A stretch of 63,424 nucleotides of DNA, filler included, from Octopus bimaculoides (Eukaryota), in the NCBI RefSeq assembly GCF_001194135.2. It is 4 parts of 4 records of this genome, joined end to end, with 100 filler letters (N's around TTAATTAATTAA, not from the genome) between each part and the next. Parts side by side here need not be neighbours in the genome. Positions count along the whole stretch, not along the records: positions 1 to 26,611 come from NC_068982.1; 3 more parts are not named here. One strand, written 5' to 3'. Below, one piece after another: positions 8,853 through 26,800 of this stretch (position 1 is its first letter; each line of letters begins with the position of its first letter). A program made the position numbers and the translations under genes. The notes under the pieces are model-generated. The model had not been told where the DNA came from. It ran no database searches and saw nothing but the letters and a program-made list of their open reading frames with translations.

Positions 8853-10839
8853 ATGTCGTGTGGAATTGTGTTGTTGTTTGTGACTGTTGTGTCCAGTTTG
8901 GTGATTGCAGCTCCCTTGAACAAGGAAGTACCATTTAATCTGAGTTCAGTAAATCAAATGAATTTTGACTTCAGTATGGTAAGTCTCTTTACTATTAGTT
9001 CTATCTGTACTTTCATATGTTGGTAACTTGGGAAGACTATAGCCCCCTCCCTCCCCGCCGCCAATACCAGCACTACTCCCCACTTAACAGTACTTTCTCG
9101 GACGTGCCTTTATCAGAGTCGGCTCTGTTGTAAGCATTTGGTAAGAACGCATAAACACCTTCTGCTCTTCCCTAGACACCCAAAGATAAAACTAAACCAC
9201 CTGGCAATTTATCTCTCCTCTTCTCTAACATCCGTGGACTCCGATCCAACCTAGACCACACACATGACTTATTACTAATGCAAACAACATATTTTATTAT
9301 CCGAGAAACAAATCTTTCAGCTTTTATCTACAAACTATCTCTATTGTCATCGCTACACACTTGACTCAAACTTAACTCCGAAAGTATCTGTGTATACATA
9401 GATGTTACTGTTCCTGCTGCTCACTTCTCTTGCCTGAATTATATGGTGCACAATTCTAGTTACTCTAGTTCAAAATCTCTCTTACCCACTCCTCCGAAGA
9501 AATAATGCCTCATCCACTGATCTCCGAATTCTTCCGACCACCACATTTACTGTACCTCTTCTTGCATCGATGATTTCCATTATATTCCAACTTTTTTGAA
9601 ATTATTTTCTTGGTGACATTAATATTCACAATCGTTTATACAGCTCCTATTCATCTCATTCTAATGCAGTAATCTTCAACTCGCTACATCACTTTATTTT
9701 TTTTTACGATTCGCTTAATGTATCGTAATGTATTGTATGTATGGATGGATGGATGGATGGATGGATGGATGTTATTGATTATTTAAATTCTTCTTTTGAG
9801 GAAGGAGTTCTTTTCTGATAAAGATACAAAGCTCCATCATTGAAATGTAGATAACAAAAATGATGTCACGTTTTAAACTTGAGAAAAGTCTTGCATATTT
9901 TTACTGTTCTACTTACAGATTGTATCTGTAATGTGCGAGTTAATTGGTTGATATTTTTTTTCTGAAAACCTTATCTTATCCCGATTTCAATAGAAATTTT
10001 CAGTCTTCAGATTTTCTGAAATCCTTCTAATTTGTTGTTTCTCATGAACAGTACTCAATAGCTAAACATATTAGGACGAATATCCTTACCGACTCTTCTT
10101 ATAAATCAAATAATTCCTTTCAACTTTTGTCAATCGTTCATCAAAACGATTAGTTTTCTTTTCATGATAAAAAAGAAACGGTGGATACCTTAAGTTCTCG
10201 AAATTCCACGAGAAACAATCACCATATTTGAAATGATGATGTAATTCAACAATCTTCAGTGATTTGTTCGGTAGACTTAATCCATCATTCTGTTAACACC
10301 ATCACCTGGCCCGTAGGTGCCGTTAGCGGAGCATTTGAGTAAGTATTTAGTCCCACCAGGCACAGAAAATCTAAAAAATGTTTATGAGGGCAGTTTTTCT
10401 TCTTATAAATAAACCATTAAAAAAAGGTGAACAAATCCTAATTTTAAATTATTTCTCCCTGAGTGGCCATCTTTATTCTCTTTAGTAATCGACGTGAACA
10501 TCTGACAATCACTAAGTCAAACGACCTGACTACATTAGATACCCAAATACTTTCACTATCCATAAAGAAAATTGCTATCCGAGACAACAGAGAACACTTC
10601 GTCCCCCTGGTTAGTTTTTTGTTTCAAGAACTGCTTCTAACATAAAACAACGTGTCTTACATTAGCATACACACACTTGGACAAAATGTTCTTATATAAA
10701 TTTAGCTTATGTTACATATACATGCCCATAATAAGATAAGTATTAACTTTCGTTCATCAGGGAATTTTTACTGCTCATTTCCTAAAGCATCTTTTGGCTA
10801 GGTCTGTTGTGACCCGCTAACACTTCTTCGCGTTAGATA

Positions 10840-10884
<45 letters not shown>

Positions 10885-11072
10885 NNNNNNNNNNNNNNNN
10901 NNNNNNNNNNNNNNNNNNNNNNNNNNNNNNNNNNNNNNNNNNNNATATATATATGTATGTATGTATGTATCTATGTATGTATGTATGCATATTTGTACGT
11001 ATGTATGTATATGTATACCAAAAATAATTAAATAAATATGTATGTCTATACCGTATGTGTGTACGATCAAGT

Positions 11073-11122
<50 letters not shown>

Positions 11123-14100
11123 TGTATGTATGTATGTATTTCGTATTATTCGTATTTCCATACCCCAGCGTATACGGAGGGAATTAGTCTTGCTGTACAA
11201 CCGAAAGTATTTTTAAGTGTCCCTAGAGAAATGCATACACTCATAGGAAGGAGTACCCGTGGTTTTCCATTAGAATTATACCATGGTGATAAACATCTTC
11301 ACACCAAAATTTAAACATAGAATCTATATCCAAGCTGTTAACAATATATTATCGTAACGGAGACACTGAGAAGTTACTGACCGAGTAAATGAAGAGTTGA
11401 AGAATATATGTGTCCTGGTAACATAATCAAACATGTATGTAATCCGGAAGATTGTTGAGTTACTATCTGTTATACATATGTCTCAACCAAACGACCAACA
11501 TCTGACTGAAGTGACATCAAAAATTCAAGTTCCATGTTAAAATACACTTGGAAATAACTACTGATATATGAAGGCACCTCGAAATCGTTCCAACCTTAAG
11601 TTTCGCTCTCAATGAGGATCTATCCTAACAACAAAAAATCTGTTAAACACAGCTAGGACCGCATCCCAGAGACTAGACCTCTTCAGGTCCGATATGTATC
11701 TCAGCCCCCGACAATTATTGATACTCTACAAAGCTCGTGTGGTATCCATAATGGAGTATTGCTCCCATATTTGGGATCGTGTTGCTACAGCATACAAAGA
11801 CATTCTAGACAGCAGAAAAGGGCTGCTCGACTGGTTGGCAAAAAGTCGTACACAAATTTGTTCCAGCCTCTGTTCCATAGGCGCAATATTTTCTTTCTGC
11901 GCCCTCTTCTGCTGCAGCTTCTCCTTAGAGCAGGCTAGGTTCAAACCACTTCCAATTATGTATTGCCGCCCAAATCGCTCCCACCCCTACCCCATCCTCT
12001 TATCTCCTTTATTGTGTTCCCCGCAATAATCGCTGCGTTCATTCCTTCCTTTCTAAAACGTCGAACCTCGGGAATTCTGTTTTTGTTCAAATATTTGTCG
12101 CGAGTGTTCACATAGAAATCTTCAAGACGAACATTAATAGCACCAAACTCACCGATCTAAGAGAGCCTGTGAAGGTCAAGGGGCCCAGTAAGTAAAAAGA
12201 TGTCCTGCACTTTGTCGGGTTACCAATTCTAACCTGTTAGGAATCCGGAAAGCTTTCAGACGTTCACCAGTTTCAATCAATGAAAGCTATAGATTATTTT
12301 TAAACATTTATTCGGGCTTGGTCACCAATATTTACGTTAAGTGTATATGTTGTTGCAAATAAAAAAGCGGTAAATTTTTAAAGGGATGATAGACAAGTCT
12401 TTCTTCAAGATATAAAAGTATTTTCTTGAACGCTAAACGGAGTTAACTGCATCACAGCGGATTCAGAAATGTTTAAGGAAATCAACAGCAAAAAGTTTTT
12501 TGGTTAACCAAAGTTCACAGAGTATCTTGTCATTACGAGCACGTACATATAACACTATTTGTGTGTGCATGAGAAAAATTTGTCAACATATATTGCATGG
12601 CCTGAGCCGGATAGGGAATTGTTCTTTGTCGTCTTAGATATTTTTCATCATGGAATGTTAAACGAATATCAATTTTAATAATTATCATAACGCAGATACG
12701 TCGTGAAACAGATTCAAGTGAATTCATATGACTGGTCGAATGCGACCAACAAGTGAAAAAATTTTGCCGGGCTAGCAAAGAAACAAGAAATAAAAACCTA
12801 CCTTTGAGGTTCTTCCATAGTGTATAATAGGTACACGGCGAGTCAGTGAGTCATATGTTCAGGTTTCAAATCTGACAAGAAATTTTGCTCCATATGCATG
12901 CATACATATTTGATTATGTTACCGGAAACCTAACATAGATTATCAAAGTAGTCTATCTTGAACCAACAACCTAAATATTAACTCTTACTTTGATGGTTAT
13001 ACTTTTGCACTACTGAAACAAGAAACAACAGTTATACATTGTCACGAGGTTTAGTTAACTGTTGCCATGATAGATATAGGGTGAAGGATATGAGATGCTG
13101 GTAGTTGAGATGGGTTCTGGCTGCGTAAAATGAATGGGACAACACTTGTGAACAAATAACAGAATTTTATTTCACCGCACAAATATTTTCCATGCTGGTC
13201 ATCAATTGAAAATGCGACAACAAAATTTACACAGTAGAAAGGACAACTCTTACAAATAGTTTAATAAGAAAGCTCTGTGAGTAAACTGCCTAGACAGGAG
13301 AAAATATACATACTGGGTTCATGTTGGTGAACTAGAGCTATTATATAGGTTAAGTGAAAGCCATGAGAATGGCTGCTAAGAGCAGCAAAATGAGAATATG
13401 GTTAGCTTAATTGCGGGTGGCTACAAATTGAAGTTTAACACTCAAAACGTGCCTATTTATAAGCTTTGTAAAGGAACGTTCTCAGCTTCTAGAACGATGC
13501 ATTACGTGGTATCTCGATGCTGATTGGTCCACAACTCGGCCGATATCATGAAAAAGCTGTTGGTAAGCTGTGATTTTAACTTGGCAGTTTGTCGATTCGC
13601 TTTCGAACCTTGCAACAACTTGATACACAAAAGAGATTGGGATGCAAGTTAGCATCTAACAGTGACACCTATGCACTCTTAGTAGAATTAAATTGAGGAT
13701 GACATACATGTCATGAGCAGTTGTTTCAAAATTTTATCAATGTATCTACATATATATGTACATACCTATAGAAGCATAAATAGTATACACAGTACTTAAA
13801 CAGGCATAACAGTGTGTAAACACGTAAACAGTACAAAAACATATACACGCACATAAGCAGTTATGAAGTCCACAAACTTGTATACTAACATGATTCGTGT
13901 GGCAACAGCTACTCTATCAGTGCAAGTTTACACACATATACACACACATACATCATCACACACACACATCATCACACACACACACACACTCACTAACTCA
14001 CACACATATACTCACGCTCTCACACATGCCCTCTCACACATATATATCTATATATATGCACACAGTGACTGATTCACAAAACTATAAATTTCAAGAGACA

Positions 14101-14637
14101 TTTTAAATGAAACAAAAGAGCCGTGTTAAATGTTTGTGATCGCCTTGACTGGCAAAAATGCAAATATATCCTAGTGAAATAACATGCGAACAAGCGAAAT
14201 GTGACAAGCAATGTTACAGGATCCAAAAGACGGAGGAAAATACTTTTTATAAATGCGCTTGTAACAAGGAGAACGTAACCAGGGAACGAAACTGTCAGTT
14301 AAAAATAAATAGTCCCCAGGGTTTCTACAAACAATTAATCACGTAGATCAGAAGTTTGCAAATCCAGGATTCATGTTTATTATTATTGGAGCAACAGGAT
14401 ACATACCAACGTGCCTGGAGCAAAATATGGCTGAACTTGGGTTGTAGGGGAGAGAAAACAACTCTTTAATCCATAAGCTACAAATAGTCACAATATCTGG
14501 GACAATAAAAATCTGCAAGACCTTCTTAAGTTTCACAACCTTACTACCAAGCAGGTGGGAGGTCCAAATTAACTCTAAATCTAACAGAGAAAAAGAAAAC
14601 ATGCATACATACGAGATGCATACATACATACATACAT

Positions 14638-14671
<34 letters not shown>

Positions 14672-14709
14672 TCACACACACACACACACACATACATNNN
14701 NNNNNNNAT

Positions 14710-14743
<34 letters not shown>

Positions 14744-15573
14744 TCACACACACACACACACACATACATACATACATACATACATACATAAAATATATTT
14801 GCACGTCAGCATATTCATAATCAACCTTTGGTGGTCAGTTTTCAGGAACTTGGCACACCATTTGGAAAAGCAAGAAATTTGTCCACGATGATTCAATCAA
14901 TATTGAGTCTAAAGAATTTTCTTCAAACTCAAGAGGAAGTATTTCATTTGTGGAAACGGATGCAAGGTAAAGTTCGTCCTTTTAATCGGAATATTTTTAA
15001 CAAATGGAAAATAAGATAGCTTTAAATCGTTTGAATGAAAAGTTTATTGTATGCAATTTTAACACTGATGAAACACGAGAAAAGGGAGTTGTAAAATATC
15101 CAGAGTTATTACTGCCCAAGAGCAAAAAGTATTGGTCTCTCAACAAAATGATTGATTGTTTGTAATCCAATATCAATATTTACGCTCACTAATTCCTCTC
15201 TTTTTAAGCCATTATTAAGGTTACACTAGTTCGGTGTGATTGAACCATTAAACTGTTGGTTTTATATCAGCGTGACCATTTCCTAAGTTAGTTGTCAACG
15301 AAGGTTAGCAAGCCAAGGCTGTAGAATCAATTAAACCACCCAATACAATGTCACACCACCATATTTATAACAAAGACTGACACCGTGAGAAGGTATTAGT
15401 GAAGACATAATAATATAAGGAGAGGCTATGTACTGGCACATGTATGATTTGTTAACGTCATACAGAACCGCTCATTAATCACGACATGGGACCAGTAAGA
15501 CCAGATAAAACATGTTACTTCATTATAGTGATATACTGTTTTACTGCTTTACTAATTTTAGCTATACATACAT

Positions 15574-15607
<34 letters not shown>

Positions 15608-18600
15608 CCTGCTGAGAAGAATTGAGGTTCTAGCCAAAATTCCAAATAATGATCCAGATATATCTGTTTCCTCATTCTACGACTTTTTAACTGAGATAGT
15701 ATGTTAAATTCTGCTCATTTTCCCGATTTCTGTTGGTCCGTTATATATTTTCAGTGAGATTGGTGATTAAATTGGGGGCTTTTACTTCCACTTTCTAGTG
15801 AGCTGGTGCTTCGTGTACCTTCTAATATAATTATGAATATGTGTATGTGTGTGTGTGTGTGTACGCACGCACACACATACACACATATAGTCATCATACT
15901 CATGGATCATGAGATAAGCGGAAAGAATAGCAATATTTAATCATATATCCAGATATATTACAATATATTCTCTTGACTCAGATTTGTAACTTCTGTAACC
16001 TCTGGTTTAAGTTTGAAACTCTTTAGATTACTTTGACATGATTTCTAGAACAGCATACAGTCAGCCTTTTAGTGCTGATCCTCCAGTATATAGACATCTA
16101 TATAATAATTGATAATGTCTTTATGTACACCTTTTGAAACTTGATATTCAAAGGGAATACTTTATAGGACTGTAAAACACTAAACTAGTCCTTGACCATC
16201 AACTCGGCCTTGATATGGTAGGCAGAGCGGGTAGTGGCTTTCGCAACCGTACCTCATACGTAGTAATCCATGAGATTACAATCGGGGAATTAGGAGGCCA
16301 GAAATTGGGGCTGGTGAAGTCGTACAAATTATCGGACAGCCGCTTCTGCTGCCACATGTATGGCCTTTCAATAGCAACCTTCTCCAGCCAGGGTTTGCTC
16401 ACAGTCTCCAACAGATTCACATAATTGTCTGAATTGAGCCCCGGCTGTTGAATAAATTCTAACGTGCTGACACATTCAGAACGCCTGTTGTGTCCCTTCC
16501 TGCTTGTCACTGCTTCGTAGTTTCCGTTGCAGCTCTCCAGGTCACGTCTTACAGCCTTAAGACAGAGCATTGAGCAGCAGGCATGCCGTCACTATTGTTA
16601 ATACGCGGCGCAAGTCATCATGATACTGGTAACTCTTTTCCGGTATTCAAATGGCTTTCAATCCTCCATGTTAGCTACCTTTTTCTCAACTACGACTTTC
16701 TTTAATCTTCATGCTTTCCAATACATCAAGCTGTTCTTGAAAGAAAGGAGACATTAAAATCGTCAAATTTAGCTCGAATACTCTCTACTACAACTAAAGT
16801 ACTTTGGTAACATATATGATTTTTCTTTTCTTCGCAATAGAGAAAACAAGTTGCACTCGACACCTGTAACTGGGGTGGCAAAAACAGACAAAAACAGTAA
16901 GTGTATTTTTTTCTTATTTCTCTTGCATTTTGTATTTCTCTTGTGATAAAACGCTTGAAAGCATGAGGAAACTATCGTATTAATGTATGGTTTGACGATA
17001 TGCATAGATAACTGTATGGGTGTTTAGCGTGAATGGATATAAAGATAATATAGGAATAAAGCTTCAATGTATATAAATGGAAATATAGTTTGAATATACT
17101 CGTATAAAAAGTCATATTGACTGCAGATGAATAGTTTAAATATTTGTAGAGATATAAATTGTATGAATATATGTGAAGCTAACTGTATGGAATTATATTT
17201 GGAATATATATATGCAGATATTTTAATAGAAATGTTTGAATATATATAGAAAGAGAGAGATTTGTAGCAGTCTAGTTCGAATGCTTATAAAGGTAACTAA
17301 ATGCAAGTGTAATATGATTATATGAGAGATAACTATATGGAGGTATACTTTAAATATTTGTAGATGAGTAATTCAATGAGATGGGCTTTAAATGTATAGA
17401 GTGATATATAAGTGGAGCTATTGTTTTAACAAATATAGATATGTACAAATGGAGCTATAGAATAAAGATATGGAAGAGTGTAGAACACAAATGAATGAAA
17501 ATATAATTTTTGGAGTTTCTGCTGTATAGATGAAGAATTCAGATTCATTCATGTACGTCTTCACAAGTTGTTTTCATACCAAGACAATATACCTATACTT
17601 TTACATGTTTTCGTAATAGTTGAGGTAGAGGAGTGGGTGACTGATACACACAATAGAGATAGGTTGAGTTACAACCCTCATGGAAGATATTTTGGATGGA
17701 CATGCGCGTAGATAGGGAAAAAGTTTTTCTTTTTCTAAATTTGGTAAACAGGATACGTATCTAGATTGATGCACTGGTGAATAGCGTCGAAAATAGTTTT
17801 GTTTATGGTGATTTATACAATGACACTAATATTGGTGCATTCTTAATATTGAAGCAAAGGGTACTGAACACTATATAAGGTGAAACTAACTTCATTTTAT
17901 AAAATACATAGCCTGTGTGTTGGTGACAGAATACTACTTCAATGAAGTAGAAAATGTTTAATAGGTTAATCATAGAAGTTCATTCGGTATATTTAACCTT
18001 GAAACTACATAGCCCTATATATAGTTTAGTTCAAATTTTTTAATCAAAGCAAAATAGTTGATAACACTAACAACATATTATTTTGGTTAAATATTTCGAC
18101 TGAGTATTTTATTTGAATGCAACACAAGTTTCGAAGAATTTAGAAAGTAAAGAAATAAACTAACACCCACCCACCACTCTACGCAACTCATTCAAGAAAC
18201 TATGGAAGCTGGTAACTTAAGATGCTCTCCGAAATATTCTATATAACAATACAATGGATTTATGTGTGGATTATCCTGTTACCAAAAAAAGTGAGGGTTT
18301 GTTTCTGCTTTATAAAGCAGCATCAGCACAACTCTGAAGCTGCAACAGTTATATTACTTCTAAGGAAATTTTCTGATTATCACAAAAGAGTTTAAAATTA
18401 AAAATGAACATTGAAATATTTGTACTTTTATAAATCAGTCACGAAGAGGATGATGAAGAGACAAATTGAATAGTAAATTTCGAGAGGGAATTGCCGTGAT
18501 TCCTGCATTTCCTGACCACATGTATCACATATGTAACAGATATATATTACTGATAGATGTAATGAATGCAACAGTTAGTAGTATTAATAGCAGATTATCT

Positions 18601-20064
18601 AAATTCCGTGGGACAGTGTGATATGCACTAAATGAACCAATAGAAGGAAAAAGATTATTTCTTACAGATTTTATTTATGAGTCAGTTCTTCGATAGGAGC
18701 AAGTTACAAAGGCTGTATCAGTCGGCTGTTTTACAGCGATGACGGGACGTTGATAGTAAGAACAGCAGCCCTGTACTTCCGGCCACGAATCGGATAGTAA
18801 AGAGAAATAGGCATACTAGAAAGATATAGACATATTCGTGCGCCAAAGTGTTGGATGAAAAAAAGAGAGAGGCATGTTCCTTTGGCAAAGTGCCGGGTGA
18901 GAGAGAGAGAGAGAGAGAGAGCATGCACTTTCGGCAGCGATGCCGAATAAAGAAGGAAGAATTCTATTTAGTGTTCTGTATTTATACATGTTTGAAAGTT
19001 GGATGTAGGTTGAAGAACAAAAGAAGGTGAATGCGTTTATCTCCGTTGAGCTGTTAAGTTAAGGAACAGAACTTATCTAAGTATGATAGTTGACATGCAT
19101 AAATTTACAATTGCAATTGCCGAGAACAATAGAAAGGAGCCTACAGAAGAAAAAAATCTAGTCTGGGGTTTTGATTCTTGGCTAAAAATCCAGGAAACAA
19201 TCATTTTCATCACTATCACCTTTTAGTGATGTTTTCAAAAACGAAACGATTCTAGGAAAATTGACAGAGATGTACACTGCGTGAAAATTTAACAACATTC
19301 TAATTTGTGAATGAAGAATATAAAGTGTACAGGATACAGGTGGATGTAATGCAAGATCAGAAATATGAAAGATAATAAGAAAGGAAATCTGGGGATATAC
19401 ATTTGGGACAGCAGGTGCATATTCGAGTGCGTTGCAATAGCATACAGGGCCGGTTATGTACAGAGCGTGCCGTCTGGTTTCGTGCGTGTCAGCTTGGGAA
19501 CAGCGTTAAGTGAGTTTGCTCGTAACTGGATACCGAATTGTTTATACATGTACGTGGGAACGGTGCAGCTGCGGACTTCCGTTGAAGGAGCCGAGGCAGA
19601 GAGTGCCATTCTGAATCCTTGGTCTAATAGGAAAATTTCTGGTAGAAGAGTGCATTCTGTGGAAGGTGCTTTAAATGAAGTGCAGAAGCCTAGTGTGTCT
19701 GGCACTGTAACTAAATGTGATTGCTGTGGGAAAGCAAATACGACAAACTAACTGCAAGACAAATGATGGATGCGCAAATTCAGGTAACTTATTCTATGCG
19801 CATCGTAACCAGAGTGAGATCATAAAGAGGTAAGTCTCTGGAAGTGCGAGCGCAGAAAGCATGGTCCGTGTTTCATAGTTCAAAGAGGCATCCGACGTGC
19901 GCAGAGTTGACACAGACATGGAAACTAATTGCTGAAGGCACAAATATTAGAGAGAGAGAGGGAGGGAGAGAGAGAGAGAGAGAGAGAGAAAGAGTGTGTG
20001 TGTGTGTGTGTGTGATAGTGGCTGTAAGCGTGAATGCATGTATATACGAACGTTTCTTTTTTTA

Positions 20065-20135
<71 letters not shown>

Positions 20136-21714
20136 TCTGCAGCAAAAAATAAGTAAACAAGCAAAAACCTGCAAGCATTTATGCAAATAAGCAACGTACA
20201 ATATGTGTTTATTATTTTTCAGTTACAGTGAGGATCGTCTCAACGGACTACAATTCTACGGCACTGCTCATTTACTGTACCGATCTCACAGAGTCTACAT
20301 GTCATCCAGACCATTACTATTTCGAGATAGCCTCAAGGACGCGCACAATGGAACCCGATGATGAAATACGGATTCTGACTGAAATAAATACTGTCAGTGG
20401 AAGATTTGAAGAAATGACGTACCTGGGTGCAGGTAACTTTCACATTCACATTTAAGGGAGAAAATATATTATAGTCATGAAAACAAAACGTCAGATTATG
20501 AGAATTAGTTCTTAGTGATACATTCTGAGATTATGTCATCTGAGGTCAAGCTAACGAGGAATCTTCAATGCGGACGTTCGACCAGCTAAAATGATCAACT
20601 AGAGCTTCTTCAAATTACAATTTACAATTAAAAAAAAAAAAAGTAAACATGGGATAGTGTGATCACACTCATTCCTATACATAAGTAAAAATGGGATGAG
20701 TGTGATCACAAGTCTACTCGATCAGGGCTGATTTGAGGGTGACAACAGCATTCGAGGGATCAGAATAAGTAATATAGCTAGACAAATGTCATATCCGAAG
20801 AACTACAGCATCCGGAAGAATAAATTCTAGTTTTACATATTAGGGTTTCCGGATAATATGCACATGGGTCATCAAAACCTCTGGAAATTATAAAATCTGA
20901 GTGACTAGGACATTAAAGAAGTATGACATCACCGGAGATAAAAGGATACCCATGGAAATAGACTTTAGCTTCTTCTTCAAATTTGATTCAATCATCATTC
21001 TTTACCAGCATTCAAACAATATCTATCCTGTCAGTGATCCTGATATACCCCTATCCTTGTCTTGTTGGTTGACTCATAGAAATCCATTCTGTTTGAAGAT
21101 AATTTATATCCCTACATTCCATCTACTTCACTTAGATTTTTCATTTTGAGTTATATTTAAATAAACATTTTTTTCTCACAAAACATGCAATATGGACTTC
21201 TCTTCTTGTGACTGTGAAATAGTCCAAACTGTGAGTCATCTGAAGGTTTGCTCTTATTGTATTTTCCTTGATATTTGAATAATTTGAGAAACAACACAAA
21301 TGTTTCGCAATATTGCATAAAAAGAGAGAAGATTTTAGATAGACATGTCATAATTATTATATCCGTTTCTAATTTTGGAACAAGGCCAGCAGTTTCTGAG
21401 GAAGGGATCAATCGATTACATTGACTTCCAGTGCTCAACATTTTATCGATCACGAAAGGATGAAAGGCAAAGTCGACCCCGACGGAATTAGAATTCAGAA
21501 AATAAAGACGGACGAAATGCCGCAAAGCATTTTGCCCGGCATGCTAACGATTCTGCCAGGTCGCCGCCTTTGTCATAACAATAATATTAAAATTATCATC
21601 TTTATCATATCATTTATTTTTGGCACTTATATTGTCTTGTTTATTTCAGACTGTGAAGGAGACAGTGTCGTATTCGATTCCATTCCCGTCACCGCATCCT
21701 TCTCCCTGGACAAT
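8853..21714 (+). CDS. Secreted lipocalin-family protein (RBP4/purpurin/ApoD-like), multi-exon, apparently multi-domain, 3' incomplete
   Basis: Phase-compatible GT-AG exons: 8853-8978 (MSCGIVLLFVTVVSSLVIAAPLNKEVPFNLSSVNQMNFDFSM, hydrophobic signal peptide, phase 0); 14839-14966 (FSGTWHTIW...ETDA, GxW motif, phase 2); 16841-16896 (RENKLHSTPVTGVAKTDKN, phase 1); 20223-20432 (ITVRIVSTDYNSTALLIYCTDLTESTCHPDHYYFEIASRTRTMEP...YLGA, TDY and SR motifs, phase 1); 21650-21714 (DCEGDSVVFDSIPVTASFSLDN, phase 0 donor GTAAGC). The join gives 195 open codons with no stop. The exon-2 acceptor is pyrimidine-poor, and one small exon may be missing between 16896 and 20223. Confidence 0.8.
9205..9700 (+). mobile_element. 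LINE (CR1/Jockey-like) APE endonuclease fragment in lipocalin intron 1
   Basis: SLLFSNIRGLRSNLDH...IRETNLS at the start and a GDxN motif (GDINIHN, frameshifted) near 9600. Confidence 0.75.
11640..12150 (+). mobile_element. LINE (CR1/Jockey-like) RT C-terminal fragment
   Basis: YLSPRQLLILYKARVVSIMEYCSHIW matches the LYKxxxRxxMEYCSHIW motif. Same orientation as 9205-9700, so possibly the same broken element. Confidence 0.75.
14370..14550 (+). mobile_element. R4/Dong-like non-LTR retrotransposon 3' fragment (restriction-like endonuclease C-terminus)
   Basis: FIIIGATGYIPTCLEQNMAELGL*...LIHKLQIVTISGTIKICKTFLSF; homologous to 36100-36280. Confidence 0.55.
16195..16760 (-). mobile_element. Tc1/mariner-superfamily (maT/DD37D-like) transposase fragment
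   Basis: LNSDNYVNLLETVSKPWLEKVAIERPYMWQQ...FWPPNSPDCN(L)MDYYV on the minus strand, with frameshifts; same family as 56090-56540. Confidence 0.8.
19380..19800 (+). mobile_element. Possible degenerate LTR-retrotransposon gag fragment
   Basis: LGTALSEFARNW...VQLRTSVEGAEAESAIL...KCDCCGKAN loosely resembles Gypsy gag followed by a zinc knuckle; heavily decayed. Confidence 0.3.
21425..21570 (-). mobile_element. tRNA-head SINE (family with GTCGACTTTGCCTTTCATCCTTTCG core)
   Basis: Reverse complement of the core also seen at 33325, 44455, 50025, 52615 and 60630. Confidence 0.8.
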
Positions 21715-22099
21715 GTAAGCACAAAGTTTTAAATCACTACGGTCTATAATGTGAAGTAATAGTTCATAGAAGAAATCAGAAGAATTTTTATATCATAGAC
21801 TGCCTCTGTCAAAACGAAATTAAGGTTAAAAAACTACAATAATGTGTCCTGAAATACTTTCAATAGATATGAACTCAAAACATATGTGGGTTGATAGGTA
21901 AACACTTTATCTACTTACCCAATACTGAAAACATTTGGAAAAGAACCCCTCTTTATCTTTAGAGTGAAAGTGCTAATTACGACACAAATATATCGAAATG
22001 TCACATATCGTATTGATACTAGGATATAGCTACTGATTCCTTTACAAATTTGTAGGTCTCTCTTGTGGAGTCAATGTATATCTTAAGGTTTTTTATATC

Positions 22100-22380: not shown

Positions 22381-23852
22381 AATGAAGTCGGTAAGCTCCA
22401 GCGAAAGCTCGAAGATCCTAACTTCCCGCAGAAGTGCTTTGGGAACACCTAGCCACAATGATGTTTCAGACCTAGAGACTGGTTCAATGAAAACAGCAAG
22501 AAGACACAGGATTTGCTGGCTAAGAAGATATCGCTCCCCACATGCTCCTTTCTCGGCCGACTTTTCCTAATGAGAAAAGCATTCCTTCGACTTATATATA
22601 ATGTACTCTTATTATTTGAAAATAATTCATACATGTGATACTCCATACATGTGATACATAGTGAATCATAACCCCATTAAAATATATAAAAATTAATTTA
22701 ACTAAATATACATATAATCACCTAAGCTATCAAAAAATAAGACTAATACATTTAAATAAATAAAAATTTGTAATAAAAATTGAAATTCTCACAATTAAAT
22801 AAGTAGAAGTTAAATAAATATGTTTATATANNNNNNNNNNNNNNNNNNNNNNNNNNNNNNNNNNNNNNNNNNNNNNNNNNNNNNNNNNNNNNNNNNNNNN
22901 NNNNNNNNNNNNNNNNNNNNNNNNNNNNNNNNNNNNNNNNNNNNNNNNNNNNNNNNNNNNNNNNNNNNNNNNNNNNNNNNNNNNNNNNNNNNNNNNAGTA
23001 TGACCTTCTGCCAGCACTACATAATTCACTGATGAACATGTCTGCTATTTTGGTTGATGTTGTCGTTGTTATATATAAAGTCATCTCTAATCAAGTAGAC
23101 CATTTACCAAAGATATCGAGTCTTGTTGGTCTTTTATTCAGATATAGGTCACATTATCCAATATACCTTTGTTTTTTTAAGAGAGCAGCCATATTGTCTT
23201 CAAATCCAGCCCAAATATTTTGTAACAGACCAAGTCGCAGCAGCAGCAGCAGCAGTAGCAGCAGCAACAGTAGTAGTAGTAGTAGTAGTAGTAGTAGTTG
23301 ATGTTGTTGTTGTCGATGATGGTGGTGGTGGTGGTGGTGGTGGTGGTGCCATCGTCATTGTTGTTTCTTTGTGATCATTATTCAGCACCAGACTAGCTCT
23401 TTTCCAGCAGGCCTATGATCAAAGATGTTCCAGCTTTGACCATTGTATCTTTTATTGAGATACAGTATACGTTGGACTATATTATATAATGTGTCCTTGT
23501 TTCAAGATAATAGAGTGTAATTTAAAGAAGATTTCATTGATATTTCTAACAGGTCGAATAAAAACATTGGAGCACTGTTTGTCGTCTGAAATCTTTATCT
23601 TCCGTGTGTTGCGCAGCCCTATTATTATTATTCATCAGACAAACAAAACTGTTGTTACATCAAGATTCTTTATCTTTCTAGATTCTTGGAAATTCCTTTG
23701 CCTTAGCACAAACAAACTTCACAGGAGCCAAACCCTTGTTAGCACACAGCATTTACCTACCTCAGATAAATCAGATTGTAGGGTGGTTCACCATTTTAAT
23801 GTAAGTAAAGTGTACTTAACTTGTATACCATGTTTTTATTTCATATTTAAGT

Positions 23853-23894
<42 letters not shown>

Positions 23895-26800
23895 TGTGTG
23901 TTTGTTTGTGTGTTTGTGTGTAAATGAAATATTTATAATGTAGATAAATATACAGTCATATATTTGAAAGCCTGTAGCTGTTGAGATAACAATTGTAAAA
24001 ATGTCCTATAAACCAATTTAAGAGAGCATTTAGATGTTTTCACATCGTCTACAATCTTCATATCTAAAGACCTTCAAATAAATGAATGAAGATTCATCTA
24101 CATTCATAGATGTTTCAGATTCTAATTTATCTTGAGTTTTATACGAATAAGTGGGAGGAGTGTGGGTATGTAAGAACGGGCACACAAATGGATAAAATAA
24201 AAATGAACCAAAAGAAATAACGCAAAATGGTAAGTGGCATGAATTTTGACAACAAAGAAGTATCAAGATATACTAAATGCCATTCAATACAAATTCTTGA
24301 TTTAATATTATTACCTTCCATTCGCGAAAAGTCTAGTGGCTGTTGCAACCGACTTCGAATGATGGGGAATGTTATGAATAAAGAACGTTTCGTAATTTTG
24401 CATTTCCATAAAGGAAAAGATAGAAAGATGGTCCAGCTTTTTGTTTTGTTTTGTTTTTCGGAGAAAAAGTATAACATTTGACATGTGTTTCTGTTTAGAT
24501 TAGTACCATCAGTACAGAAGTTGTATCACATTGACTCCAGCCAAACATAAGATTTAAACATTCTAAATGAACTATCATAGTAACGGTGATAATTGTAATG
24601 ATGATGGTAATAATAATAAGTATTATTATTATTTCTACTGCTACCACCGCCACCACTAACAACAGCGATAATAAAAGAGATAGGAGGATCTTAGGATTCA
24701 CCAAATGAACATTGACTCGATTGAAATGTAAAAATCTCTGGAGTAGCAATAGAATTCAATGAAAACAAGAATGTTGTTTACAACATTCCAAAATATGGCC
24801 AAACAATTATTCCTTCAGGTGAGGTCAAAGTAAAGAATCCTTGATATGCCCGCCAAATCATGACATCTACGCCACATGCTGATTGGTCAAAGTACAAATC
24901 GTATGATTCAGCCTGCTGGAGACCATCAGAGGGCATTTAAAGGTTAAACCAACCATTTCACTACAGCTGTCAATTGTGGAACGCGACTGTCACTACATAA
25001 ACCTAATGACTGCGTAAAACATGAAAGTACTAGTTTAATTCAATATTGCAAAATTGTAAGATTGTAAAAATTGCAAATAATAAGACGCGAAAATCAGACT
25101 AAGCTGGAATTTCATTGATTAATATATTCTTCTCTACACAATCATACAAACTGGGATACACACATGCACGCGCGCGCGCACACACATACTTTTATATATA
25201 TATATATNNNNNNNNNNNNNNNNNNNNNNNNNNNNNNNNNNNNNNNNNNNNNNNNNNNNNNNNNNNNNNNNNNNNNNNNNNNNNNNNNNNNNNNNNNNNN
25301 NNNNNNNNNNNNNNNNNNNNNNNNNNNNNNNNNNNNNNNNNNNNNNNNNNNNNNNNNNNNNNNNNNNNNNNNNNNNNNNNNNNNNNNNNNNNNNNNNNNN
25401 NNNNNNNNNNNNNNNNNNNNNNNNNNNNNNNNNNNNNNNNNNNNNNNNNNNNNNNNNNNNNNNNNNNNNNNNNNNNNNNNNNNNNNNNNNNNNNNNNNNN
25501 NNNNNNNNNNNNNNNNNNNNNNNNNNNNNNNNNNNNNNNNNNNNNNNNNNNNNNNNNNNNNNNNNNNNNNNNNNNNNNNNNNNNNNNNNNNNNNNNNNNN
25601 NNNNNNNNNNNNNNNNNNNNNNNNNNNNNNNNNNNNNNNNNNNNNNNNNNNNNNNNNNNNNNNNNNNNNNNNNNNNNNNNNNNNNNNNNNNNNNNNNNNN
25701 NNNNNNNNNNNNNNNNNNNNNNNNNNNNNNNNNNNNNNNNNNNNNNNNNNNNNNNNNNNNNNNNNNNNNNNNNNNNNNNNNNNNNNNNNNNNNNNNNNNN
25801 NNNNNNNNNNNNNNNNNNNNNNNNNNNNNNNNNNNNNNNNNNNNNNNNNNNNNNNNNNNNNNNNNNNNNNNNNNNNNNNNNNNNNNNNNNNNNNNNNNNN
25901 NNNNNNNNNNNNNNNNNNNNNNNNNNNNNNNNNNNNNNNNNNNNNNNNNNNNNNNNNNNNNNNNNNNNNNNNNNNNNNNNNNNNNNNNNNNNNNNNNNNN
26001 NNATATATATATATATATATAGCGAACTAAATTCTTTTTTCTAGGGCGATTAGTGACAACAAAACTGTATGCAATCCAGTAATGCGGAGTATGACTAAAG
26101 TAAGCCCTGATAACAATGGTATTCTGTACAGCAAAATCGGTCACTTTGAAATCATAAATAAATGGAGTAAGTAATTTTTTTTTCTTACAACTTCCTACAT
26201 TTGTATGTCATTTGCAATTAACTAAAGCATACAGATGATGAGTTTGCATATAACTGTATTCATTGCTTTACGACTTTAAAATATCGCATAACATTCTATG
26301 GGTCATTGAAATGATGTTTGATAGTTAAGGAATCACTTCCATTTTCTGTTTACTTTAAATTTGATTCACGATAAACTCATGTTTAACTTTGTTATTGTCT
26401 TAACCTATGAGCATAATATGCTTGCATATGTATGTGAAGGGTTAACATAGGTAATTACACCGGTAGTATAACGGGTATTTTTATCCCTTAGAAGATTATT
26501 CCAATCTCTAACTCTACTAACCTTATATATATATATATATATACAGTTCTATATTTAAGAGATGAGGAATGTAAATAATGTAAATATATATATATATATA
26601 CATACATATATNNNNNNNNNNNNNNNNNNNNNNNNNNNNNNNNNNNNNNNNNNNNTTAATTAATTAANNNNNNNNNNNNNNNNNNNNNNNNNNNNNNNNN
26701 NNNNNNNNNNNGCAGTTGGGGGGGGGGGCAAAGAAGGAAGATTAAAACTTAGTACAGATGGCGATGTTTAAAAATAAACTAGAATTGAACAAATTCCCCG

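Follow-up and report, generated by a model that had tools for sequence, protein, structure and literature searches.

A predicted secreted protein of four tandem lipocalin domains encoded by LOC106871838 of Octopus bimaculoides

Introduction

Lipocalins (calycin superfamily; Pfam PF00061 and PF08212) are almost always single-domain proteins, in which an eight-stranded antiparallel beta-barrel is succeeded by an alpha-helix and a ninth strand. Their GxW motif lies on strand A after a short 3-10 helix, and a conserved Arg lies on the final strand of the barrel. Moth polycalins attach to the gut brush border, carry a glycosylphosphatidylinositol (GPI) anchor and bind chlorophyllide or Cry toxins. 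Among the single-domain lipocalins, human RBP4 has the disulfides 4-160, 70-174 and 120-129, and ApoD has Cys8-Cys114 and Cys41-Cys165 and lacks a cysteine pair in the loop between strands G and H (G-H loop). A polycalin is defined as several lipocalin-like domains in one polypeptide with a single signal peptide (PMC10145054), and in the searchable literature multi-domain lipocalins were found named and studied in Lepidoptera only. ApoD is by current opinion the most ancient metazoan lipocalin, RBP4 is probably a vertebrate novelty, and the canonical lipocalin intron phases are 0,2,1,1,1 (PMC3184775). Here we describe LOC106871838, an Octopus bimaculoides gene of the multi-lipocalin kind, which begins in the first part (positions 1-26611, from NC_068982.1) of a 63,424-nucleotide (nt) stretch of four joined parts, referred to below as the window.

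A first-pass annotation of this DNA had joined five exons within 8853-21714 into the start of a secreted, concatenated lipocalin with RBP4/purpurin-like features, and had proposed it as a candidate for an uncharacterised protein that might carry retinoid, pigment or odorant ligands. Exons 1-7 of the 18 exons of LOC106871838, its 5' third, make up the region. This gene, in our judgement, is likely to encode a 735-amino acid (aa) predicted secreted protein of four tandem lipocalin domains that would act as a multi-ligand carrier.

Results

Gene identity and exon structure

The five exons join into 585 nt, or 195 stop-free codons, whose translation is identical at every residue to residues 1-195 of the O. 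bimaculoides RefSeq protein of LOC106871838 (735 aa, "uncharacterized protein"), so that open segments joined by chance are no explanation. Exon 1 starts at its ATG and the other four follow AG acceptors; the GT donors read gtaagt, gtaaag, gtaagt, gtaact and gtaagc, and the exon-end phases are 0, 2, 1, 1 and 0. All five exons and the motifs NFD, FSGTW, TDY, YC-x7-C and SRT were located on the plus strand exactly where the first-pass annotation had put them, with canonical splice sites and compatible phases (Table 1). The product of exon 1 is by itself identical to residues 1-42. Exons 6 and 7, absent from that annotation, also lie in the piece, within which residues 1-275 are encoded, and the remaining 11 exons lie past its end. 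A GxW exon downstream of exon 5 had been sought by eye and not found, because domain 2 has lost the Trp of this motif.

Piece 1-26611 corresponds to positions 1149-27759 of the LOC106871838 locus (GCA_001194135.2, CM046602.1, within 121.88-121.94 Mb) with 100% identity and identical gaps. The description of the product as uncharacterised holds for its RefSeq name, but the protein is not undiscovered: the gene is already modelled in RefSeq and UniRef and is functionally unstudied. Its UniRef name begins "Lipocalin/cytosolic fatty-ac..." and PF00061 is on record for LOC106871838. Literature searches on the gene identifiers and on octopus lipocalin or RBP returned nothing specific; an octopus optic-gland study names "lipocalin" without an identifier.

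The translation of exon 4 was searched against 1.8 billion protein representatives. The matches included a 727-aa protein of Argonauta hians and very long predicted proteins of Owenia, Batillaria, Saccoglossus and Spodoptera, each with several matching stretches. Two of the eight matches, a TPR/CHAT protein and a repeat protein, were discarded as spurious (low-complexity or repeat). With the Argonauta protein as query, Octopus sinensis LOC115224175 and O. bimaculoides LOC106871838 were recovered, both 735 aa long; identity to the O. bimaculoides protein is 88% for O. sinensis and 55% for A. hians. The 195-aa join gave no match in a word-indexed protein search, an index miss rather than an absence, as the identical protein is in the collection. 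Searching with a profile of the three orthologues added no relative at E ≤ 0.01, and at the sensitivity of the indexed search the close relatives are the three octopod proteins only.

When the Octopus and Argonauta genomes were compared, the exons alone could be aligned, and the ratio of nonsynonymous to synonymous substitution rates (dN/dS) was ~0.30 at dS ~1.1; the gene is therefore maintained by purifying selection, though changing fairly fast. Exon 4 is 71% identical to Argonauta (E 1e-23), and exon 2 is aligned by the Argonauta protein (E 4e-9) and conserved in DNA as well. Exon 3 is the least conserved, with 71 nt in Argonauta against 56 nt in Octopus and 21% protein identity; its counterparts in domains 2-4 are larger, at 101-122 nt.

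A four-exon module repeated four times

Exact spliced mapping resolved the whole gene into 18 coding exons over ~45 kb, all GT-AG. The exon-end phases run 0,2,1,1; 0,2,1,1,1,0; 2,1,1,0; and 2,1,1,stop, and exon sizes recur from domain to domain (128/119/107/137, 56/122/113/101, 210/210/216/207 and 65/(45+80)/92/74 nt). One four-exon module with end phases 0,2,1,1, which are the first four of the canonical lipocalin phases, is thus found four times, in Octopus and in Argonauta alike. The O. sinensis orthologue, whose gene range is above 100 kb, appears to have 18 exons as well. The domains span about residues 21-173, 174-350, 351-535 and 536-735, and a hidden Markov model (HMM) built from 12 octopod domains drew four full-length envelopes in each protein, including the mollusc orthologues of O. 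sinensis and Argonauta in which a domain count had been called for.

The earlier suggestion that the last exon of the join restarts the lipocalin pattern was borne out. Exon 5 (DCEGDS at 21649/21650) aligns with the conserved Cys segment at the N-terminus of each following domain in other multi-lipocalins, and its phase-0 end, like that of exon 1, marks the start of the second module. The proposed concatenation extends, with the two added exons and those beyond the piece, to four domains.

In frame upstream of exon 5, a polypyrimidine tract (21421-21649, plus strand) translates into the hydrophobic stretch IIIFIISFIFGTYIVLFIS, with Met codons before it, that mimics a signal peptide; this stretch is probably a by-product of T-rich sequence. 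Together with the position of every domain boundary at or next to an intron, such a signal-peptide-like stretch after in-frame Met codons is what might be put forward for a fusion artefact, in which predictors would have merged a tandem array of four single-domain lipocalin genes into one 735-aa protein. Yet a polypyrimidine tract translates to just such a stretch, exons 5, 9-10 and 14 encode mature N-terminal segments only, and no further start codon or signal peptide is needed. All junctions (17/17) are phase-compatible and without an in-frame stop, the 18 exons and their phases are kept in gap-free Argonauta DNA at ~55% protein identity, and the linker exons are conserved, with exons 9, 14 and 18 being 100% identical in O. 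sinensis. Chains of several lipocalin domains are moreover predicted elsewhere, in one annelid, one gastropod, one hemichordate and one moth. We therefore regard a merger of four genes as very unlikely.

A second alternative concerns the 21714 donor. If it were skipped, read-through (...SLDNVSTKF) would reach a stop codon five codons past the donor, at 21730-21732, and the main product would be a single-domain lipocalin of ~200 aa, with the four-domain form minor or unmade. The donor is strong, however (gtaagc, with gtaagt in the Argonauta homologue), exons 6 and 7 have kept both sequence and phase, and neither AATAAA nor ATTAAA occurs in the ~950 nt after exon 5, compared to ~2 per kb in piece 1-26611. 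The short protein would also leave Cys175 unpaired, whereas in the four-domain protein this residue belongs to a complete six-Cys domain 2. Such a main product is very improbable, although a short read-through isoform is possible as a minor product.

Lipocalin assignment by profile comparison and predicted fold

Searched against PDB sequences, the 195-aa join gave 24 weak matches, which were lipocalins in 24/24 cases and all collinear, with chicken RBP the best (E 0.0085). The profile of domain 1 gave 33 weak matches, again all lipocalins, led by chicken RBP (E 0.026) and followed by Fel d 4 and beta-lactoglobulin, and a three-species profile of domain 4 matched human RBP4 over residues 4-164 with E 1e-5. 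The four domains are mutually collinear in alignment (P 2.8e-5 to 0.11). By hhalign, each of them matched 31 domains of four non-octopod multi-lipocalins with a probability of 98.4-99.5% (P 1e-15 to 1e-22); toward five domains of Pfam lipocalin-positive Saccoglossus and Spodoptera proteins, the probability was 97.6% for domain 1 and 96.7% for domain 4.

The lipocalin hallmarks are unevenly kept. GxW is present in domain 1 (G45-T-W47), domain 3 (G390-I-W) and domain 4 (G566-T-W); in domain 2 (G198-N-S) the Gly is kept and the Trp is replaced by Ser. TDY occurs at 111 in domain 1 and at 649 in domain 4 and is degenerate in domains 2 (SDR) and 3 (IDE). The conserved Arg is found at 142, 313, 498 and 679, and its column is nearly invariant in a 20-row alignment. 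Domain 1 is shortened, having lost ~15-20 residues around strands D-E and four of six cysteines.

For residues 21-350, AlphaFold was given non-overlapping domain pairs aligned in 20 rows. The model (predicted local distance difference test score (pLDDT) 76, predicted template modelling score (pTM) 0.68) contains two strand-rich units with a helix after each. In the model, at least eight strands of domain 2 are followed by a helix and a further strand; domain 1 has seven strands, a helix and a last strand. In a Foldseek search of the PDB, the top 50 matches were all lipocalins. Bovine, chicken and human RBP ranked first (E 2e-7, template modelling (TM) score 0.76-0.77), and ApoD reached TM 0.75 and E 3e-7. 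The barrel-fold check proposed in the first-pass annotation thus returned lipocalins only and a full strand set for domain 2, but seven strands for domain 1.

Several points weigh against the four-domain lipocalin assignment. In the Pfam check that had also been proposed, the 195-aa join stayed below threshold, with Lipocalin_2 at 12.4 bits against 24 (E 0.16) and Triabin at 16 against 21 (E 0.011); the full-length Argonauta orthologue, by contrast, passes the gathering score of Lipocalin PF00061 (26 against 23 bits) owing to domain 4. Among PDB sequences, nothing matched the profiles of domains 2 and 3. Full-length AlphaFold from a three-row alignment reached a pLDDT of 36 and was unusable for fold comparison, and in the shorter model protein residues 74-99 (model residues 54-79, the end of exon 2 and exon 3 in the D-E region) fall below pLDDT 50. 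As that model was built on an alignment chosen from lipocalin-like domains, it is not independent of the lipocalin assignment, which it supports without independently proving. The domain-to-domain joins, finally, come from gene prediction, backed by conservation across three octopods, of which at least the Argonauta annotation looks homology-transferred.

Cysteine framework and resemblance to RBP4

Human RBP4, with the sequence of the PDB match except for its last 20 residues, was aligned with 43 domains of the family. Its Cys 4, 70, 120, 129, 160 and 174 fall on the six conserved Cys columns of the family in 6/6 cases. These columns are occupied in 16-19 of 19 Owenia domains and 4-7 of 7 Batillaria domains, and in 2/2 Saccoglossus domains for five of the columns; Spodoptera shares two columns. 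By column alignment, O. bimaculoides domain 2 has all six RBP4-type cysteines (6/6). Five are found in domain 3, which has two extra ones, and four in domain 4, where two others are displaced; domain 1 retains the loop pair only. In domain 2, the column of RBP4 Cys4 is occupied by Cys175, the "DC" of exon 5, and the disulfides predicted for this domain are 175-333, 244-348 and 293-301. All four domains have the G-H loop pair.

RBP4 leads the structural matches (TM 0.77) as well as the sequence matches of domain 4, and its TDY...YxC-x7/8-C...SR stretch closely resembles that of the octopod domains. On the other hand, RBP4 has a single domain where the octopus protein has four, sequence identity is 14-17%, and domain 1, on which the first-pass annotation mainly relied, keeps the loop cysteine pair alone. 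The domain 4 profile scored 28.5 bits for RBP4, 27.2 for crustacyanin, 26.1 for a bilin-binding-protein derivative and 25.9 for ApoD. Orthology to RBP4 is unsupported, because these scores fail to separate RBP4 from ApoD or crustacyanin. From the RBP4/purpurin likeness claimed earlier, the six cysteines of domain 2 and the loop pair of every domain are retained, and orthology is dropped. The aligned columns argue that the resemblance is a real property of the domain family at the level of the cysteine framework.

ApoD and Lazarillo have the same fold and the GxW, TDY and Arg motifs in common with the octopod domains. ApoD is a single-domain protein and differs from the octopod framework in its disulfide pattern.

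Comparison with other multi-domain lipocalins

With lepidopteran polycalin, or chlorophyllide A-binding protein (Bombyx mori, Helicoverpa, Plutella, Spodoptera), the octopus protein shares a multi-domain chain behind one signal peptide, and exon 4 alone matched a Spodoptera protein with 13 Pfam lipocalin stretches. The two differ in domain number (4 in octopus, 13-15 in moth polycalins) and at the C-terminus, which in octopus is hydrophilic and without an anchor-like tail, so that the membrane attachment of the moth proteins has no predicted counterpart. The moth (Spodoptera) domains share two of the six conserved Cys columns, and we take their cysteine pattern to be of the ApoD/bilin-binding-protein type. 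Given this different pattern, the octopus and moth architectures may have arisen separately. In scores, too, the octopod domains are closer to those of the annelid, the gastropod and the hemichordate than to moth domains. The octopus protein is polycalin-like in its predicted architecture, and orthology to polycalins is not supported.

Closer matches were found among three unnamed predictions, for which the searchable literature yielded no describing paper: Owenia fusiformis CAH1786129.1 (5687 aa, ~30 tandem lipocalin domains), Batillaria attramentaria KAK7459419.1 (2221 aa, partial, at least 10 lipocalin domains plus immunoglobulin (Ig) domains) and Saccoglossus kowalevskii LOC100368303 (1041-1172 aa, 4-6 lipocalin domains plus low-density lipoprotein (LDL)-receptor class A). 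Their domains are of the same type (hhalign 98-99.5% with every octopod domain) and have the same six-Cys framework, and the N-terminal Cys segment of each next domain follows directly after the previous C-terminus, as exon 5 does in octopus. Each octopod domain scores 27-43 bits against some Owenia or Batillaria domain and at most 15 bits against its sister domains. Since the outside matches are the stronger, the domains appear to have diverged before the octopods, which at low resolution suggests an older ancestor with several domains as the source of the four-domain protein.

Predicted protein and possible function

Residues 1-19 form the sole strongly hydrophobic stretch (the sole hydrophobic 19-mer), end in V-I-A/A (the slash marking the predicted cut) and fit the -3/-1 rule; they are signal-peptide-like, in agreement with the signal peptide predicted in the first-pass annotation. 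The mature chain has up to 19 N-glycosylation sequons, 21 cysteines and a calculated mass of 81.5 kDa. Its C-terminus (...NTVKSTDWKKERQSR) is hydrophilic, and no hydrophobic segment exists besides the N-terminal one.

On these features, the protein would be a soluble secreted glycoprotein with a peptide mass of ~82 kDa. Each beta-barrel could serve as a calyx for a small hydrophobic ligand, with several ligands carried per molecule, and the chain might be large enough to remain in haemolymph, or in some other fluid outside cells, with no need of a partner protein, avoiding loss by filtration. Domain 1 (shortened, four Cys lost) and domain 2 (GxW Trp lost) may have altered or inactive binding sites; with these hallmarks gone, they may bind differently or not at all.

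The same losses would also suit a true four-domain lipocalin with a role other than carriage. Such a protein might hold pigment in skin or eggs, like crustacyanin, might belong to saliva or mucus, or might use its degenerate barrels as binding surfaces in the role of a scaffold or receptor ligand. Toward domain 4, crustacyanin scores nearly equal to RBP4; the protein changes rather fast (the two Octopus species are 88% identical, and dN/dS is ~0.3); and moth polycalins are gut-surface proteins, not blood carriers. No pointer to a tissue or partner is present in the sequence, however, and an anchor, another domain type and a repeat-rich region are all absent. We consider a non-carrier role somewhat unlikely, although the features above do not discriminate it from multi-ligand carriage.

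Assembly gaps and surroundings of the gene

Piece 1-26611 is AT-rich, microsatellite-rich animal DNA with eight runs of N; the features located in it are collected in Table 1. Simple-sequence repeats (AT, ACAT, TATG, CA) lie at or near the edges of the N runs, which are identical in the public chromosome record, and larger gaps bound the piece at both ends. The two gaps at 10885-10944 and 14698-14707 both fall inside intron 1 and are flanked on both sides by microsatellite (AT/TATG and ACAT, respectively). In the gap-free A. hians orthologue exons 1 and 2 follow each other without an additional exon, and across the exon 1/2 junction the proteins of all three orthologues stay collinear. The gaps in this range alter only the estimated length of intron 1 and leave the coding sequence untouched.

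A mariner-type transposase remnant is recognized by Pfam Transposase_1 at 4394-4711 (E 3e-22) and resumes beyond an N gap. Two minus-strand open reading frames (ORFs), 6120-6548 and 16199-16570, resemble DDE tails by eye and had no Pfam match; the latter lies within intron 2 of the lipocalin gene. The ORF in intron 1 that contains LSPRQLLILYKARVVSIMEYCSHIWD had no Pfam match either, and presumably resembles the C-terminal tail of a non-long-terminal-repeat (non-LTR) retrotransposon reverse transcriptase. At 533-1941 the DNA is GC-richer (up to 0.50), with long ORFs on both strands that by eye are rich in Cys, Val, His and Tyr; Tandem Repeats Finder reported no array there, and no gene-like signal was seen. 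Searches for Rfam families and tRNA genes found none in piece 1-26611.

Table 1 Features located in piece 1-26611 of the window
Feature	Position	Strand	Content
Exon 1	8853-8978	+	ATG, predicted signal peptide MSCGIVLLFVTVVSSLVIA, N-terminal segment of domain 1 with NFD (8961); phase 0 end, gtaagt
Intron 1	8979-14838	+	Two assembly gaps, microsatellites, possible reverse-transcriptase tail remnant
Exon 2	14839-14966	+	FSGTW at 14839 (GxW, strand A), domain 1 strands B-C; phase 2 end
Exon 3	16841-16896	+	56 nt (19 aa), domain 1; phase 1 end; low-confidence part of model
Exon 4	20223-20432	+	TDY; YC-x7-C loop; SRT with the conserved Arg; domain 1 C-terminal helix and final strand; phase 1 end
Exon 5	21650-21714	+	DCEGDSVVFDSIPVTASFSLDN, N-terminal segment of domain 2 with Cys aligned to RBP4 Cys4; phase 0 end
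Exon 6	23682-23800	+	ILGNSF...; domain 2 GxW position with Trp replaced (G-N-S); phase 2 end
Exon 7	26045-26166	+	Domain 2 middle strands, Cys in RBP4 Cys70 column; phase 1 end
N runs	4714-4963, 5937-6076, 7469-7522, 10885-10944, 14698-14707, 22831-22996, 25208-26002		Assembly gaps
Mariner-type transposase remnants	4394-5327	+	Pfam Transposase_1 at 4394-4711, resuming beyond an N gap
	6120-6548	-	
	16199-16570	-	
Possible non-LTR reverse-transcriptase tail remnant	11616-12026	+	ORF in intron 1 containing LSPRQLLILYKARVVSIMEYCSHIWD

Discussion

For genome annotation the result is ordinary: a RefSeq model exists, and the reconstruction from raw sequence was correct. As far as its sequence tells, the gene product adds a new member from octopods to the multi-lipocalin ("polycalin") kind, and its predicted RBP4-type cysteine framework would set it apart from the moth proteins. 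Octopods keep a predicted secreted four-domain lipocalin whose domains are nearer to those of the annelid, snail and hemichordate giants than to moth polycalins.

A bolder reading would make the octopod gene the four-domain survivor of an old bilaterian poly-lipocalin family with a complete RBP4-type six-Cys framework, to which the Owenia, Batillaria and Saccoglossus proteins would also belong. We think this unlikely. If it were true, lipocalins of the RBP4/purpurin type would be older than vertebrates, and the family would be a candidate extracellular carrier of retinoids or carotenoids in invertebrates with retinal-based vision, such as cephalopods.

LOC106871838 thus offers an expressible candidate for the extracellular transport of lipophiles (retinoids, carotenoids, sterols and pigments) in cephalopods, and a candidate that may bear on the origin of the RBP4-type lipocalin.

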